Below, piece after piece: positions 3,465-52,641 of a DNA stretch of 64,000 bases. The notes under the pieces are model-generated. The model did no database searches. It saw only the letters and a list, made by a program, of their open reading frames with translations, and was not told the origin of the DNA. The DNA comes from Anolis carolinensis (Eukaryota), in assembly GCF_035594765.1 (NCBI RefSeq), contig NC_085841.1, positions 353,409,402 to 353,473,401 of the forward strand. The letters are read 5' to 3'. The translations under genes were made by a program, and so were the position numbers. The stretch's first letter is position 1. Each line of letters opens with the position of its first letter.

Positions 3465-5201
3465 TAATTCACAAAATGTGCAAGTTTTGTAATTCTCCAG
3501 AACTCTTCATCAACATAAGCCAGAAGTTTTGGGGTGCGTCACTGTCAGATTAATGTGATTTAACACTTTAACTGCAATGGCTCAGCGGTAGGTAATCATG
3601 GGAGTTGTAGTTTGGTGAGGCCTCAGCACTCTTTGGCAGAGAAGGCTAAAGACCTTGTAAAGCTACGGCTCCCAGGACTCTATAGCATTGAGCCATGGCA
3701 GTTAAAGTGGGATCAAACTGTGTTGATTCAACAGTGTAGATCAGTCATAGGCTTAAGCGGCTGAGGGGGAAAAGGAAGGGGCCTGAGGCTGTTAAGAATT
3801 GTGGGAGTTGAAGTCCAAAACACCTGGAGGGACCAAGTTTGCCCATGCCTAGTGTAGATACAGCATTTGACAAATATTTGAAATTACTGGAATGATTAGG
3901 CATCACAAGAGACAAAGGCACTTAAGGTATTTCCTGTTGAAATATAACTGCCAATAAGACAATATTGTTTAGGAAATATGTTTGAAATTGAGCAGCGTAA
4001 GTCACTTTTGTCACTGCTTTAAAAATCTAGAGCAGACATCCAAGGCAGGCAAACACTGTCAGCAAGACCTTCTGATGGAAATGCTGGAGATGCAGATTTA
4101 CAACACTTCTTCCTTAATTGGTTCCCAATCTTAGCAACATCTGCTGCTTTGTGGGTTTTCTTCCATCTTGTGGGCTAAACATTTACAACAGCAGCAACAA
4201 ACCATTTTGTCTGCAGCCATGTTTCTGATGTGCTGTCAGGACTCCTGATCCATTGACGCATTTGCCATTTATAGTCTCTGTGATTTTTGGAAGCAGTTTT
4301 CAACCTGTTCTCAACAAAGCTATGAGTTAAGCAGTGGATCTTAGCTTTTAGGGACTCTTGAAATATTATTTATTCCATTTTTTGTTTTACTGTCCAACTT
4401 GATTCATGTTCTCATAAAATGTGTTGAACCCAATACTGTCTTTCAAAAAGAAATGGACTTTGGCAGAAATTCTGAAACGCAGTCCAAGGATATGAGTATG
4501 GATCAATTTCCTATGTACACTGTGGCAATGGAGCAGCAAGTCTAAAGAGTTGCAGCCAGGTTGCTCACTGGGGCTGGCTGCTAGTCTGTTTACGGGCACA
4601 ATTCAAAGTGCTGGTTATGACCTTTAAAAGCCCTAGACCAGTGGTTCTCAACCTGTGGGTCCCTAGATGTTTTGGCCTTCAACTCCCAGAAATCCTAATG
4701 GCTGGTAAAATGGATGGGATTTATGGGAATTATAGGCCAAAACACCTGAGGAGCCACAAGTTGAGAACCACTGCCCCAGACAGTTCAGGTCCAGGCAACC
4801 ACATCCACTTGTACAAACTTGCCTGGGCCCTGAGATCTTCAGGAGAGGCCCTTCTCTCGGTCCTACCTTCATCTCAAACACAATAGGTGAGAACGAGAGA
4901 GCGGGCCTTCCTTCTCGGTGGCTGCCCTTAGACTCTGGAACTCCCTTCCCAGAGAAGCCAGAATGGCTCCTTTCATGCTGTCCTTCCAGCAACAGTTAAA
5001 ACCTTTTTATTCAGGCCGGCTTTTAAATAAGGTTTTTAATATCGTCAGGGGCTGCTGTGATTTTATTGTGAGCTGCTTTAGTCTCCGTATGAAGAGAAAA
5101 AGCGGGATAGAAATAAACATCATAATAAATAAAAATACATCACATAAATACACAAAGAAGAACTCAAGGGACCAAATTTTATACTCCCTGTCTTGTAAGG
5201 C

Positions 5202-38720: not shown

Positions 38721-39130
38721 TATTTACCTCACTCTGAGGGAAAGGAAAATGGGTGTCTCTCTAACTGGAGAATTGATGCGATTTGACACCACTTTACCCT
38801 GCCTCAAGGCTATGGAGTCCTGTATTCTGCTTTGGTTAGACCTCACCTGGAATACTGTGTCCAATTCTATTCAAAAGAGATATTGACAACCTGGAAGGCG
38901 TCCAGAGGAAGGCCACTAAAACGATCAAGGGCCTGGAAAACAAGTCCTATGAGGAACGGCATAAAGAACTGGGTCTGCTTAGTCTAAGGAAGAGAAGGTT
39001 GAGAGGGCACATGATAGCCATGTATAAATGGTCCGATTGAAGGCTGAAGCATGAGGTTTTTAGACAAATTGATCTAATTTACATATGTTTTAATTGTTAT
39101 AATGTATTTTAATGATGTATTTTTATAGTT

Positions 39131-39163
<33 letters not shown>

Positions 39164-40602: not shown

Positions 40603-40735
40603 NNNNNNNNNNNNNNNNNNNNNNNNNNNNNNNNNNNNNNNNNNNNNNNNNNNNNNNNNNNNNNNNNNNNNNNNNNNNNNNNNNNNNNNNNNNNNNNNNN
40701 NNNNNNNNNNNNNNNNNNNNNNNNNNNNNNNNNNN
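40603..40735. other. Assembly gap (133 N) in a purine-rich low-complexity tract
   Basis: Run of N. Confidence 1.
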
Positions 40736-45068: not shown

Positions 45069-45098
45069 ATAATCAAACAAACAAACAAACGAATGTAA

Positions 45099-46020
45099 TG
45101 TGTTGTCGAAGGCTTTCATGGTCAGAATCACTGGGTTGCTGTGAGTTTTTCGGGCTATATGGCCATGTTCCAGTAGCATTCTCTCCCGATGTTTCACGTG
45201 CATATATGGCAGGCATCCTCAGAGGTTTGTTCAGAGGTCTGTTGGAAATGAGGCAAGAGGAGTGTATATATCTGTGGAATGTCCAGGGTGGGAGAAAGAA
45301 CTTGTTTGTTTGGGGCAAGTGTAAATGTTACAGTTAACCAGCTTGATTAGCAATTGAATAGCCTTGGAGCTGCAAAGTCAAGCAGTGAGGGTATTTGCAT
45401 TGAGGTAGCTTGGCTGCTGTGCCTGGAGGCATCCTTTATTTGAGAGGTTTTAACTGGCACTTGGTTGTTTGCTATCTGGTATTCCCCTACTGTCTTGATT
45501 CTGGTGTTTTTTAATACTGGTAGCCAGAATTTGTTCATTTTCATGGTTTCCTCCTTTCTGTTGAAATTGTACACATGCTTGTGAATTTCAATGGCTTCTC
45601 TGTGTAGCCTGACATGGTGGTTCTCAGAATGGTCCAGCATTTCTGTGTTCTCAAATAATATTCCGTGTCCAGGTTGGTTGATTGAGTGCTCTGCAATAGC
45701 TAGCTGACTTCTCTGGCTGAATTAGTCTGCAATGCCTTTTGTGTTCTTTGATTCATGTCTGTGCATTGCTGTGTTTGGTGGTCCCTATGTAGACTTGTCC
45801 ACAGCTGTATGGCCTATGGTAAACTCCCTCTTATCCTTTGCTGAACAAAGCATTTGTTGGATTTTCTTGGCAGACCTGTATATTGTTGTTAGGTTGTGTT
45901 TCTTCATCAGCTTCCCTTTGCGGTCAGTTGTTCCCTTGATTTATGGTAAGAACACTTTACCTCTGGGTGGATCTTTGTCTTTACTCTTGTGGCTTGTTCC
46001 TGGTCTTGCAGCTCTTCTGC
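45099..46020 (-). mobile_element. Penelope-like element, 5'-truncated: GIY-YIG endonuclease region and 3' end
   Basis: Degenerate GVY...SCGQVYIGTT...IAEHS...HREAIEIHKH. Degenerate hammerhead at about 45181-45230. Possible decayed 16-bp TSD at 45083-45098 / 46021-46036. Confidence 0.88.
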
Positions 46021-46367
46021 AAATAAACAAATATAAGTGTATTAAGACTCAGAAAACAACAAGTTAACCCCTTAGCATTCCATGTGTTCATAGCTCCTCT
46101 GGTAACCCTCAATTCTCAAGGTGCATCAATGCTGTAGATCAGGTTTGGGCAAACTTCAGCCCTCCAGGTGTTTTGGACTTCAACTCCCACAATTGGTAGG
46201 CTGTTAGGAGTTGTGGGAGTTCAAAACACCTGGAGGGCCCAAGTTTGCCCAAGCCTGAAAGCTTATTGCTTTAGCAACAGATTGTAAATCAGAGTAGCTT
46301 TCATACAAAGATGTAACAATTTCTGACAGCCACACGATGGTGCACTTCCTTTAGATTTTCCTCATCT

Positions 46368-46484
46368 ATACCTCATCCATACCTCACAACCTCTGAGGAT
46401 GCCTGCCATAGATGTGGGCGAAACGTCAGGAGAGAATGCTTCTGGAACATGGCCACACAGCCCGAAAGACATACAACAACCCTG
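46368..46484 (+). mobile_element. 117-bp Penelope terminal fragment consisting mostly of the hammerhead
   Basis: Homologous to the 3' end of the 45099-46020 element; perfect TSD TTTCCTCATCT at 46357-46367 / 46485-46495. Confidence 0.85.
46382..46434 (+). ncRNA. Minimal type-I hammerhead ribozyme motif with intact core
   Basis: CUGAGGA 46393-46399, extra U, stem II GCCUGC/GUGGGC, GAAA 46420-46423, palindromic ACGU in place of stem III, GUC cleavage triplet ending at 46427, stem I CCU/AGG plus CUC/GAG. Confidence 0.75.
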
Positions 46485-46713
46485 TTTCCTCATCTTGTTG
46501 GCCACTTATTTTTCCCATTGCATTCACAATTCTTGCCTGGGCTCCTAACCTAGGAAAATCAGAAACCTGTAAGGGCAATAATGTAGGTATGAAAATGGGA
46601 GCGAGAACTCTATCTTGGGTTAAATACAGCTTTCAATTTGCCTAAATAACTGTAGCAACAGAGAGTAAGAATACTACTGCACAGTTCCAGGCCAGTGAAT
46701 GGCAAAACATCTA

Positions 46714-46986
46714 CACCTCCCAACAAAGGATTCCTCCAGGCAGGAATCAGCCTGGCTTGGAAGCTGCAAGGCTTTTCAATGCCAATCAAGTAGATTAATT
46801 GCAGCATTCACACTTGTCTCAAGCAAACAAGAGTTCTTTCTCCCTCTCTGATCATTCCACAGATATATAAACCCCACTTGCAGACCTCACAACCTCTGAG
46901 GATGCTTGCCATAGATGTGGGCAAAATGTCAGGAGAGAATGCTTCTGGAACATGTTTCATACAGTCCGGAAAACTCACAGCAACCC
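46714..46986 (+). mobile_element. Penelope terminal (pseudo-LTR) fragment
   Basis: Homologous to 45130-45440. TSD AAAACATCTA / AAAATATCTA. TATATAAA at 46864. Hammerhead core decayed (GAAAC to AAAAT). Confidence 0.85.
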
Positions 46987-47040
46987 AAAATATCTATAAT
47001 TTTGGACCTGATCCTGGAGAAGCAAGCCAACTTGGCAGTA

Positions 47041-48344: not shown

Positions 48345-48735
48345 GTAAGCGTCCCCTTTATTATTGCCCTCCCTTGGCTGGGGTCCCTTGTTTTTGGTTC
48401 CTCCGAAGAGGGTGCTGGTGGATGCCATGAAAGGAAGGCTGAGAGGAGAATAGGAAGGTCTGACGGCTAGGTTGGATTATATAAATAACTCCAAGGCAAT
48501 AATAGCCTTTCTGGGAATGTGTGGTACCATCCATAGTGTTTAGATCAGGCATTGGCAAACTTAGGCCCTCCAGATGTTTTGGACTTCAACTCCCACAATT
48601 CCTAACAGTCCTCAGGCCCCTTCCTTTTCCCCCTCAGCCGCTTAAGCGGCTGAGGGGGAAAAGGAAAGGGCCTGGGGGCTGTTAGGAATTGTGGGAGTTG
48701 AAGTCCAAAATACCTGGAAGGCCCAAGTTTGCTCA

Positions 48736-49084
48736 TTCCAGACAAGGAACAATCAGGACCCGTTAACACCTCCCAACAAAAGATTCCCCCAGGCAGGAAA
48801 CAGCCAGACTTTGAAGCTGCGAGGCTATTCAGTGCTCATCAAGCTGGTCAGTTGCAACATTCACACTTCCCTCAGGCAGACAAGAGTTCTTTCTCCCACC
48901 CTGGACTTTCCACAGATATATCAACCACACTTACCTAGTTTCCAACAGACCTCACAATCTCAGAGGATGCCCTACATGGATGACAGCAATACGTCAGGAG
49001 AGAATTTTTCTGGAACATGACCATACAGCCCGGAAAACTCACAGCAACCCAGTGATTCCGGCCACAAAAGCCTTTGACAACACC
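48736..49084 (+). mobile_element. Penelope terminal fragment in CLBA1 intron 1
   Basis: Same family as the other three copies; hammerhead core degenerate (CAGAGGA...AATAC-GTC). Confidence 0.82.

Positions 49085-49545: not shown

Positions 49546-49602
<57 letters not shown>
49546..49602. repeat. (AAT)n microsatellite; others at about 39133-39163, 49098-49114 and 52575-52641
   Basis: Read directly. Confidence 0.95.
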
Positions 49603-49606
<4 letters not shown>

Positions 49607-52596
49607 TATTCTTCTATCCCGCCACCATCTCCCCAAAGGGACTCAGGGAGGCTAACATGGGGCCAAGCCCAAAACAGGAACAAGGTATGACAATTTAAAA
49701 CATATATCAATAACTAAAAACAATGATACAACAATCAAATAAAATAATCGATCAAAACGTAACATACAATAAAATATATAATGACCAAGCAGAATGAGGT
49801 TTTATTTATTTCGTGTCAAAAGCATTGTACATTTCAAATAATGGAAAAAAAAAAGGAATCACAAGCAGAATGAGGTAAATAATATAAACATCAACGACTA
49901 TGGATAAAAGGGGTTGGGCATATAAAAATATAAGAGTTCAAGGCCTTTTATTAAAGTGCATGGACAAGTGTCAGAGAGTTGGACGGGATAATGCAGGACC
50001 AGATAAATAGGAAGGGAAATAGTGTTAGGAAGTAATATATCAGTGAAGGTAGCGCCTTCCATCCAGCTGAATAGAATCCCACATTATCTGCATTGAACTG
50101 GAATATATGGCTTTGTGGAAGGGCCCCCAGATAACCCAGTTCAAAGCAGATATTGTGGGATTTTCTACCTTGATATTCTAGGTTATATGACTGTGTGGAA
50201 AGGCCCTTTATTTGGAGGAAAGAGGAGTACATGTGTATCAAAGTACTGTATTACTCCCATTTCTAAAGGTTTTGTAGAAATGTGTAGCACATGTTTATAT
50301 CAAAAAAAGAAAAAGTTGCCACCTTAGTGACCTTATAGATGTGGGCAATCTCGAACAGAGGGCCTTCTTTCTTGGGCCTCTTATCCACTGCCGTATAATC
50401 CAGAATATCAAGGCAGATAATCCACATTATCTTCTTTGAACTGGAGTATCTTAATCTACACTGCCGTTTAATCCAGTTCAAAGCAGATAATCTGGATTTT
50501 ATACAGCTGTGTAGAAAGGGCCTTGGTTCTTACAGATTTCACATTTCCTATTTTAACCCACAGGTTAAAACCCTATCACTCATTAATCCATCAAACCAAT
50601 TCTGTATTCTTTTCAACATCACTCATATGTTTTTTTCCCTCAAAAATAGCACCTATCCAACTCACTCTTTTGTTCAGAAATTCAAGCACTAATTACATTG
50701 AAAGGTACTCAAACACATCCTCACAATATAGTGAAGGTAGCATCTTACAGCTAATTCTGACTGTGTCTGTCCTCCCTGGATTGCCTGTTAGTGAAAGAAA
50801 TTGTGTGAAGCCAAGTGAGATTGGAAGCGAGAAGCATTTCTTTAAAGACAGCAGTTTTTAAAAGATGCAATCTTGCATAAGAGAGATTTGTTTTTTAAAA
50901 ACATATTTTTAAAGGATAACACCAGTAACTCACATCTTGCGACATAATTGTACTATACTATTATTTTTGTGCCATTCCTTTTACCTCGATTAAGCATGTT
51001 CTAGTTTAGTTCAGTATTGCTAGAATCTCCAATGTGAATGGTAGATTATTAAATCAAAATAGTATCTCAGTCGATATGGATAATAACATAAAGGCTGGAA
51101 AGACTTTCAAATGGTTGAATAGAGGTTGCCTCAATAGAATATGTTGCCTCCCTCAGTTAAATGCAATAGACAGGAATATGCACACAGAGCTAGAAATAAT
51201 ATTTCAAATTCCTAAGCGTCTGGATGGACATAGTGTTCCTGTAGTCCTAAATTCTATATGGCCACATGATTGCACCTTATATTGGATTACACAATATCTT
51301 GCTCATTGTAGTCCTTTTAAAGCTTTCAGGATTTTGCAAAGAGTTATTTCCCTTATTGGTTACTTAAAATCAGTTATCATAGCGAATGGATTTTGGGGCA
51401 TTATTACTTCAGTAGAAAATTGTGTACAAGAAACAAATAATGTGGAAACAATAGGGGTGAATTCCTAGACCACAAAAAAGAAAAGCTCTTCAATGCTTTT
51501 CAGCAAAGCCTTTGGTCAAAATTAACTGTATACACACGTGAAATTAAAAAGAAAAAACCTCAAGTCAAATAGTTCTTCAGTAAGTTCATAAAAACTTCTA
51601 GAGACCACTTGCAAGTTTCTTCCAAATTGCATCCAAGAATTATTTTTTCTTTCAACTGCCTTTTTCTTATGGATTCCATTTATGTGGCCACATTTATACA
51701 GCTATGCTTTTTTTAACATGCGGGGGGTACCTTATGAGATCAACTTCTCCGTCCTGCTCTTCACACATGCTTTGTAAGTGATTTTGCAGTTAACTACTGT
51801 TTACCTTGCCTGTTGTAGGCAGGTCTCCACAGCTGCAGTAGGGATCAGAGAAGAATCCCATTCATTACTGACTCAAGTTTTATTCATCACTCTCTCAATG
51901 CTTTCTTCACCGTACTCTTAATTTCAGTGCTGCTAAAGACCTTCTAACTAGACAGCGAATGAGAAGAAAAAGGGCCACAAAGAAGACTTTGTAAAAGTCT
52001 TTCTCAGTGGCTTTATTAGTGGAAGAAGTATACTGTTTAGCTGAGTGAAAACATCACCCTCTCCATCATGGGTCCTAAATAGGAGTGGCTGATGTTGACA
52101 AATATTGAGGTACTGGGAAATTTTGCAACAGCAACGTAGAGCCCATCACCACCACTTCCTTTTCTTTTAAAAGTTCTTGCTGCTATTGGAAGCGGTGAGG
52201 GCTGTATGAGCAACATTTATATCTCAGTTGAGAGATAAAAGCTGAAATATAGCAACAATAATTCTCACCCCGCTCTTCTCACCCCGGAGGGGACTCAGAA
52301 CGGCTTACAAATCAAATATACATACAATATATTATTAGCATTGCACAATATAAGCATTAAATTACTATATTGTACTAAATCATTATATGGTAATATTATT
52401 AGTAATATTACATTTAATATATAATATTATTATATTATATTATTATTAGTATAATATTGTATTACATTATAATATTATTGTCAATATTATAAGTATAATA
52501 ACCTTCTTGATATCACAGATCATGATCATTGGGGAGAAATCATGGTCACCCCCTTCCAAATATGGTTTTCCCTTTAATAATAATAATAATAATAAC

Positions 52597-52641
<45 letters not shown>

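Follow-up and report, generated by a model that had tools for sequence, protein, structure and literature searches.

A 117-bp hammerhead-bearing insertion in the green anole genome, very probably a recent and extremely 5'-truncated copy of the Penelope-like element Poseidon_Ac

Results

The insert and its target site

The 64-kb stretch of Anolis carolinensis DNA analysed here (hereafter the window) is vertebrate-like in composition (38.8% GC; CpG observed/expected ratio of 0.29) and carries, on the forward strand, a 117-bp insert at 46368-46484. On either side of the insert lies one copy of an 11-bp target-site duplication (TSD), TTTCCTCATCT, at 46357-46367 and 46485-46495, which a script identified as the sole direct repeat of at least 7 bp between the two junction zones. 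These perfect duplications had been recognized in a preliminary description of the locus, and contigs that retain a single TSD copy (a joint from 46356 to 46485, at which 11 letters are compatible with either side) prove that the DNA between them was inserted. The boundary between the TSD and the 3' end of the insert is ambiguous by one nucleotide, because the next consensus base of the element and the first base of the TSD are both T; the TSD can thus be read as 10-11 bp and the insert as ending at element position +86 or possibly +87.

Apart from its first eight nucleotides, the insert consists of sequence already known from Poseidon_Ac (PAc), a Penelope-like element (PLE) of the green anole with a consensus in Repbase (Arkhipova 2006; Frangieh et al. 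2024, PMC11167929). All 109 nucleotides of 46376-46484 are identical to that consensus (109/109) in a by-eye comparison with the printed text of File S1 of PMC11167929. The first 23 of these (46376-46398; 23/23) are the last 23 nt of the pseudo-LTR (pLTR; consensus 2645-2667, or -23 to -1) and carry core positions C3-G8 of the hammerhead as well as the 5' strand of its stem I, while the following 86 (46399-46484; 86/86 against consensus 1-86) are the first 86 nt of the ORF, +1 to +86. The start codon (46399-46401) lies inside the hammerhead and the translation that follows, MPAIDVGETSGENASGTWPHSPKDIQQP, is the published N-terminus of PAc. The derivation from a PLE proposed in the preliminary description is therefore borne out by both nucleotide and peptide identity. 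Membership in Poseidon_Ac is indicated by the identity to the consensus, by a 3' end at a published RT start site, and by the TSD with its empty site.

The insert represents only 4% of the 2667-bp Poseidon_Ac unit. It is without the RT/GIY-YIG ORF, the promoter and the tail and, with nucleotides 1-86 of the ORF alone, it is a truncated copy of an element that is otherwise autonomous. None of the 10 ORFs of at least 130 amino acids in the window had a Pfam match, and thus no PLE ORF is apparent anywhere in the 64 kb.

The eight additional nucleotides at the 5' junction (46368-46375), ATACCTCA, are missing from the empty-site allele and are not consensus sequence at that position. The same octamer recurs at 46379-46386 (element nucleotides -20 to -13), so that the stutter noted in the preliminary description was seen again, and the extra nucleotides overlap a second copy of the target motif CCTCATC (46371-46377). 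They are not common to the repeat family, as the depth of Logan contigs in the bin 46360-46375 is more than 200-fold below that of the next bin. The arrangement looks like a template-switch or microhomology stutter, in which synthesis may have slipped on the CCTCA that target and element have in common.

The hammerhead motif

The insert contains a minimal type-I hammerhead motif on the forward strand (46390-46430). Stem I pairs 46390-46392 with 46428-46430 and is followed by C3-A9 (CUGAGGA, 46393-46399), an unpaired or bulged U (46400), and a 6-bp stem II with two G-U pairs (46401-46406 with 46414-46419). The G12-A15.1 segment (GAAA) occupies 46420-46423, C15.2, G16.2 and U16.1 occupy 46424-46426 (the palindromic ACGU being 46423-46426), and C17 is at 46427, with the cut predicted between 46427 and 46428, equivalent to +29 and +30. 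Thus the core boxes CUGANGA, GAAA and UH are all present (46393-46399, 46420-46423 and 46426-46427), together with the G10.1-C11.1 pair (G46401-C46419) and palindromic positions 15.2 and 16.2, and a helix III loop is absent. The complete motif set out in the preliminary description, with all core nucleotides, stem I, stem II and ACGU, was recovered as described, and its predicted cut equals the published PAc cut between +29 and +30 (Frangieh 2024, PMC11167929), where the ATG is likewise placed inside the hammerhead. Because both the ORF start and the cut position agree, the motif is the published PAc hammerhead and not a new one.

A minimal-hammerhead descriptor requiring the core boxes, G10.1-C11.1, a stem II of at least 4 bp, palindromic 15.2/16.2 and a stem I of at least 3 bp matched the window once on its two strands, at the insert, and matched none of 200 shuffled sequences that preserve dinucleotides; for the core boxes by themselves, the mean was 0.21 matches per shuffle. 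Hallmarks of PLE minimal hammerheads beyond the descriptor, which include G10.1-C11.1, a long helix II with a short helix I, and palindromic 15.2/16.2 (Cervera & de la Pena 2014, PMC4209133), are all displayed by the insert (4 of 4). The hammerhead models of Rfam had no match at the gathering score in the whole window or at E<=10 in 46300-46560, searches that returned only two chance snoRNA-like matches, and we attribute this silence to the missing helix III hairpin.

The folding of the motif is unremarkable, with single-strand z-scores of -0.7 and -1.0. The minimum-energy fold of a single copy (-14.4 kcal/mol) pairs the core nucleotides, compared to only -8.6 kcal/mol for the hammerhead-like secondary structure, and the minimum of a cofold of two copies was not the hand-drawn active dimer. 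The insert contains three CpGs, all of them shared with the published consensus. Across related contigs that are at least 92% similar, variants of the CpG-decay type (C>T or G>A) at 46419/20 (C11.1/G12) and 46424/25 (C15.2/G16.2) make up 17-32% of the depth, and genomic copies thus appear to decay freely at the ribozyme core, without visible constraint.

Other copies in the window

A blastn search of the locus against the window revealed three further copies of the repeat, each about 280-320 bp in length, 80-87% identical and older, of which the insert matches only the 3' ~105 bp. The copy at 45097-45379 (reverse strand) is 5'-truncated and tailed (~35 nt), with its end near ORF position +118 to +121. 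The copy at 46713-46987 (forward strand), about 87% identical to the insert over a shared 106 bp, is a tail-less, 5'-truncated member of a related Poseidon-type subfamily and has its 3' end at the same point as the insert. The copy at 48766-49083 (forward strand) is also 5'-truncated and tailed, ends near +118, has a decayed hammerhead core, and is the copy that extends the furthest in the 5' direction, reaching the 3' end of the PLE ORF. The hammerhead of the copy at 46713-46987 (46896-46930) is broken by G12>A at 46923 and C15.2>T at 46927, both CpG-type transitions that should kill the core. A search for TSDs around the three older copies found none that was convincing; one 8-mer for 48766-49083 falls inside PLE-homologous sequence.

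The 5' ends of the four copies all differ, at -23 for the insert, at about -140 for 45097-45379, at about -190 for 46713-46987, and further upstream in the PLE ORF for 48766-49083. Their 3' ends fall in only two classes, both published: about +86 (the insert and 46713-46987) and about +118 (45097-45379 and 48766-49083). PAc has two internal start sites for reverse transcription, separated by a ~34-nt "tail" at approximately nucleotides 85-119 of the ORF (PMC11167929). As its end at +86 coincides with the upstream RT start site, the insert is a tail-less copy. Two fixed 3' ends combined with scattered 5' ends point to variable 5' truncation and not to a discrete mini-family, though four copies are few.

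The empty site and the age of the insertion

Logan contigs from four runs of four studies (X1, X3, X9 and X10) were placed on 46200-46650. The exact empty site, with one copy of the TSD, is present in contigs from X1, X9 and X10, representing three independent studies. These contigs extend from 46228/9 to 46356 and continue from 46485 onward, skipping 128 bp with 0 mismatches and at least 128 letters on each side. In X3, a mismatch-free contig (46461-46650) crosses the filled 3' junction and includes, beside the right flank, the final 24 nt of the insert; those 24 letters inside the insert are below the 31-letter rule for bridging. No X3 contig was found at the left flank (46264-46359) while the right flank was covered, and such a hole proves nothing.

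The empty site in three runs combined with the filled junction in a fourth implies that the insertion is polymorphic and recent. The zero differences from the consensus and the intact CpGs of the insert are consistent with this presence/absence polymorphism, and the youth proposed in the preliminary description is upheld by all three observations: 109/109 identity, CpGs as in the consensus, and empty-site alleles in other individuals. Penelope insertion polymorphism is common in the species, with 16,208 polymorphic insertions reported in the green anole (Bourgeois et al. 2020).

Between 16,000 and 64,000 pieces of related contigs (similarity of at least 92%) fall on 46376-46487, a depth profile from which neither copy number nor the distribution of truncation points can be read. 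The consensus of their loose ends is pLTR sequence upstream of 46376-46381 and the tail downstream of 46485. Since the upstream consensus is pLTR, most relatives are longer than the insert. Joints between 46247-46258 and numerous sites within the insert connect two high-copy repeats at an unknown spacing and were left out of the 5'-end data.

Discussion

The feature is very probably a recent and polymorphic insertion, with extreme 5' truncation, of Poseidon_Ac, an autonomous Penelope-like retrotransposon of the green anole. It shares with PAc the 109-nt identity, the ATG-inside-hammerhead layout, the cut between +29 and +30, a 3' end at the published upstream RT start site, flanking TSDs and an A/T-rich nick site, and differs in its eight extra junction nucleotides and in its lack of the RT/GIY-YIG ORF, promoter and tail. 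Judging from the published in vitro mechanism, the PAc protein would have bound a Poseidon_Ac transcript and nicked the bottom strand between 46356 and 46357, at the A/T-rich AGAT/TTTC beside an ATT. Reverse transcription would have begun internally at the upstream of the two start sites (~+86), leaving the tail uncopied, and would have proceeded for ~109 nt through an uncleaved hammerhead to -23. Synthesis would then have stopped, attachment of the 5' end involving a short slip on the CCTCA common to target and element, and a top-strand nick 11 bp downstream would have generated the TSD. Evidently, the template had remained uncut at the hammerhead of the insert.

The same set of features appears in 5'-truncated LINE insertions (e.g., L1), which combine a constant 3' end, a variable 5' end, a TSD, a 5' junction with microhomology or added nucleotides, and copies that are dead on arrival. 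Unlike these, the insert has no poly(A) and its 3' end lies inside the start of an ORF, since the RT of PLEs begins at an internal position of a tandem transcript. Templates for PAc must contain ORF nucleotides 1-172 (PMC11167929), and an insert that ends at +86, without the region +87 to +172, is thus not re-copiable. Together with the lack of a promoter and an ORF, this makes it most likely that the insert was itself dead on arrival and is not a propagating mini-element.

The ribozyme within the insert is intact in sequence, yet it is most likely inert at this locus. In vitro, this exact motif was cleaved only when PAc protein was present, with the expected pattern for C3G, G8C and the rescuing double mutant, and the cut site showed no RNA-seq ends (PMC11167929). 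As the published motif is inactive without the protein, the hammerhead most likely does nothing on its own. Cleavage as dimers is an established idea for PLE hammerheads in general. The hammerhead of the insert is alone on its strand, and the nearest copy, ~500 nt downstream, carries G12>A and C15.2>U. The preference of the lone RNA for the core-pairing fold and the lack of published in vivo ends at the site also argue for an inert motif. Compared to metazoan PLE minimal hammerheads (PMC4209133; Lunse, Weinberg & Breaker 2016, as cited in PMC6765202), the motif has the same CUGANGA and GAAA boxes, unpaired nucleotide between A9 and G10.1, G10.1-C11.1 pair, 6-bp helix II, 3-bp helix I, missing helix III loop and palindromic ACGU. 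There is no structural difference, but the published activity of the PAc element is protein-assisted and not that of an RNA-only dimer.

The preliminary description had left a choice between an extreme 5' truncation and a tiny retrozyme-like family, and it is the truncation, with its four 5' ends and two 3' ends, that stands. The alternative holds that the insert belongs to a discrete SINE- or retrozyme-like mini-family of ~110 nt, composed of a hammerhead and an RT entry site, that PAc would copy in trans from abundant short junction RNAs, so that the 5' end would be the transcription start within the pLTR and not an RT truncation. Some observations do lean this way: the junction of pLTR and ORF is reported to show a peak of RNA-seq coverage, with reads that end at the RT start sites (Frangieh et al., PMC11167929), animal non-LTR retrozymes are derived from PLE pLTRs in a 2026 preprint (Li et al. 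2026), and the backward joints in X9 described below hint at short tandem hammerhead units in other parts of the genome. Against these stand the composition of the insert as nucleotides -23 to +86 of an autonomous consensus, without the template region that PAc would require to copy it again, its first eight nucleotides that the family does not share, the pLTR sequence that continues upstream of 46376-46381 in most relatives, the different 5' end of each copy in the window, and a locus without tandem structure. A discrete mini-family is consequently very unlikely. A related proposal, that ~110-nt junction mini-insertions carrying the hammerhead and the upstream RT start are a preferred product class, templated in trans by short and abundant RNAs of the pLTR-ORF junction whose transcription starts in the pLTR near -23, is decidedly unlikely as well. 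If it were true, such mini-insertions would be the seed of vertebrate non-LTR retrozyme arrays; the idea that PLE termini seed retrozyme arrays is found in the 2026 preprint (Li et al. 2026).

It is extremely improbable that the hammerhead-like motif is a chance resemblance without ribozyme meaning and the insert merely a repeat fragment. The silence of the Rfam hammerhead models even at E<=10, the unremarkable fold z-scores and the free loss of the core CpGs across the family are what a chance motif would show, but the full descriptor found no counterpart in any shuffled sequence, each of the four hallmarks beyond the descriptor is present, and the identical motif of PAc was cleaved in vitro with mutant and rescue behavior as expected of a hammerhead (PMC11167929).

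The truncated Poseidon_Ac copy also differs from the animal non-LTR retrozymes (Cervera & de la Pena 2020, PMC7229834; Li et al. 2026 preprint), which are similarly small, non-coding, hammerhead-bearing and related to PLE pLTRs. Retrozymes are tandem repeats that give rise to circular RNAs, whereas the insert is a single TSD-flanked unit with neither end at the ribozyme cut. Head-to-tail hammerhead units, by which retrozymes are recognized, do not occur at the locus, where the closest further copy lies at a distance of ~500 bp, is older and results from a separate insertion. As a single, non-tandem unit with the ends of target-primed reverse transcription in place of ribozyme-cut ends, the insert is not a retrozyme.

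It should be noted that the element, its hammerhead, the layout with an ATG in the ribozyme, the two internal RT start sites, and Penelope insertion polymorphism in the green anole are all already published, and the locus offers little new biology. It is instead a clean natural example for which the empty site has been identified, and it shows in vivo what the in vitro work of 2024 predicts: a start at the upstream site, cDNA synthesis across a hammerhead left uncleaved, a staggered cut of 11 bp at an A/T-rich site, and a 5' junction formed by template slippage. Possible uses of the locus include that of a population marker and a textbook case.

Neighbouring sequence and backward joints

Several observations were made beside the insert. 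In X9, the interval 46376-46463 has many joints at which a contig goes back on itself, for example from 46452 to 46382 with 9 letters between, at a depth of ~2000 compared to 22 for single-copy sequence. These joints suggest that head-to-tail, hammerhead-bearing units of ~60-90 bp are present elsewhere in the genome, either as retrozyme-like arrays or as stacked truncated insertions, and nothing in the data ties the insert locus to them.

A short repeat of very high copy number lies ~100 bp upstream of the insert (46216-46263) and is found also at 46135-46258, 48555-48732, 3751-3850 and 388-453. Inverted copies within the window are 92-94% identical and the repeat looks MITE-like, with a depth of 10^5-10^6 in all four runs compared to 5-22 for the single-copy flank. 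A run of 133 N at 40603-40735 marks an assembly gap or masked sequence, and AAT-type trinucleotide microsatellites at 39130-39162, 49548-49602 and 52572-52641 came up repeatedly as blast matches.
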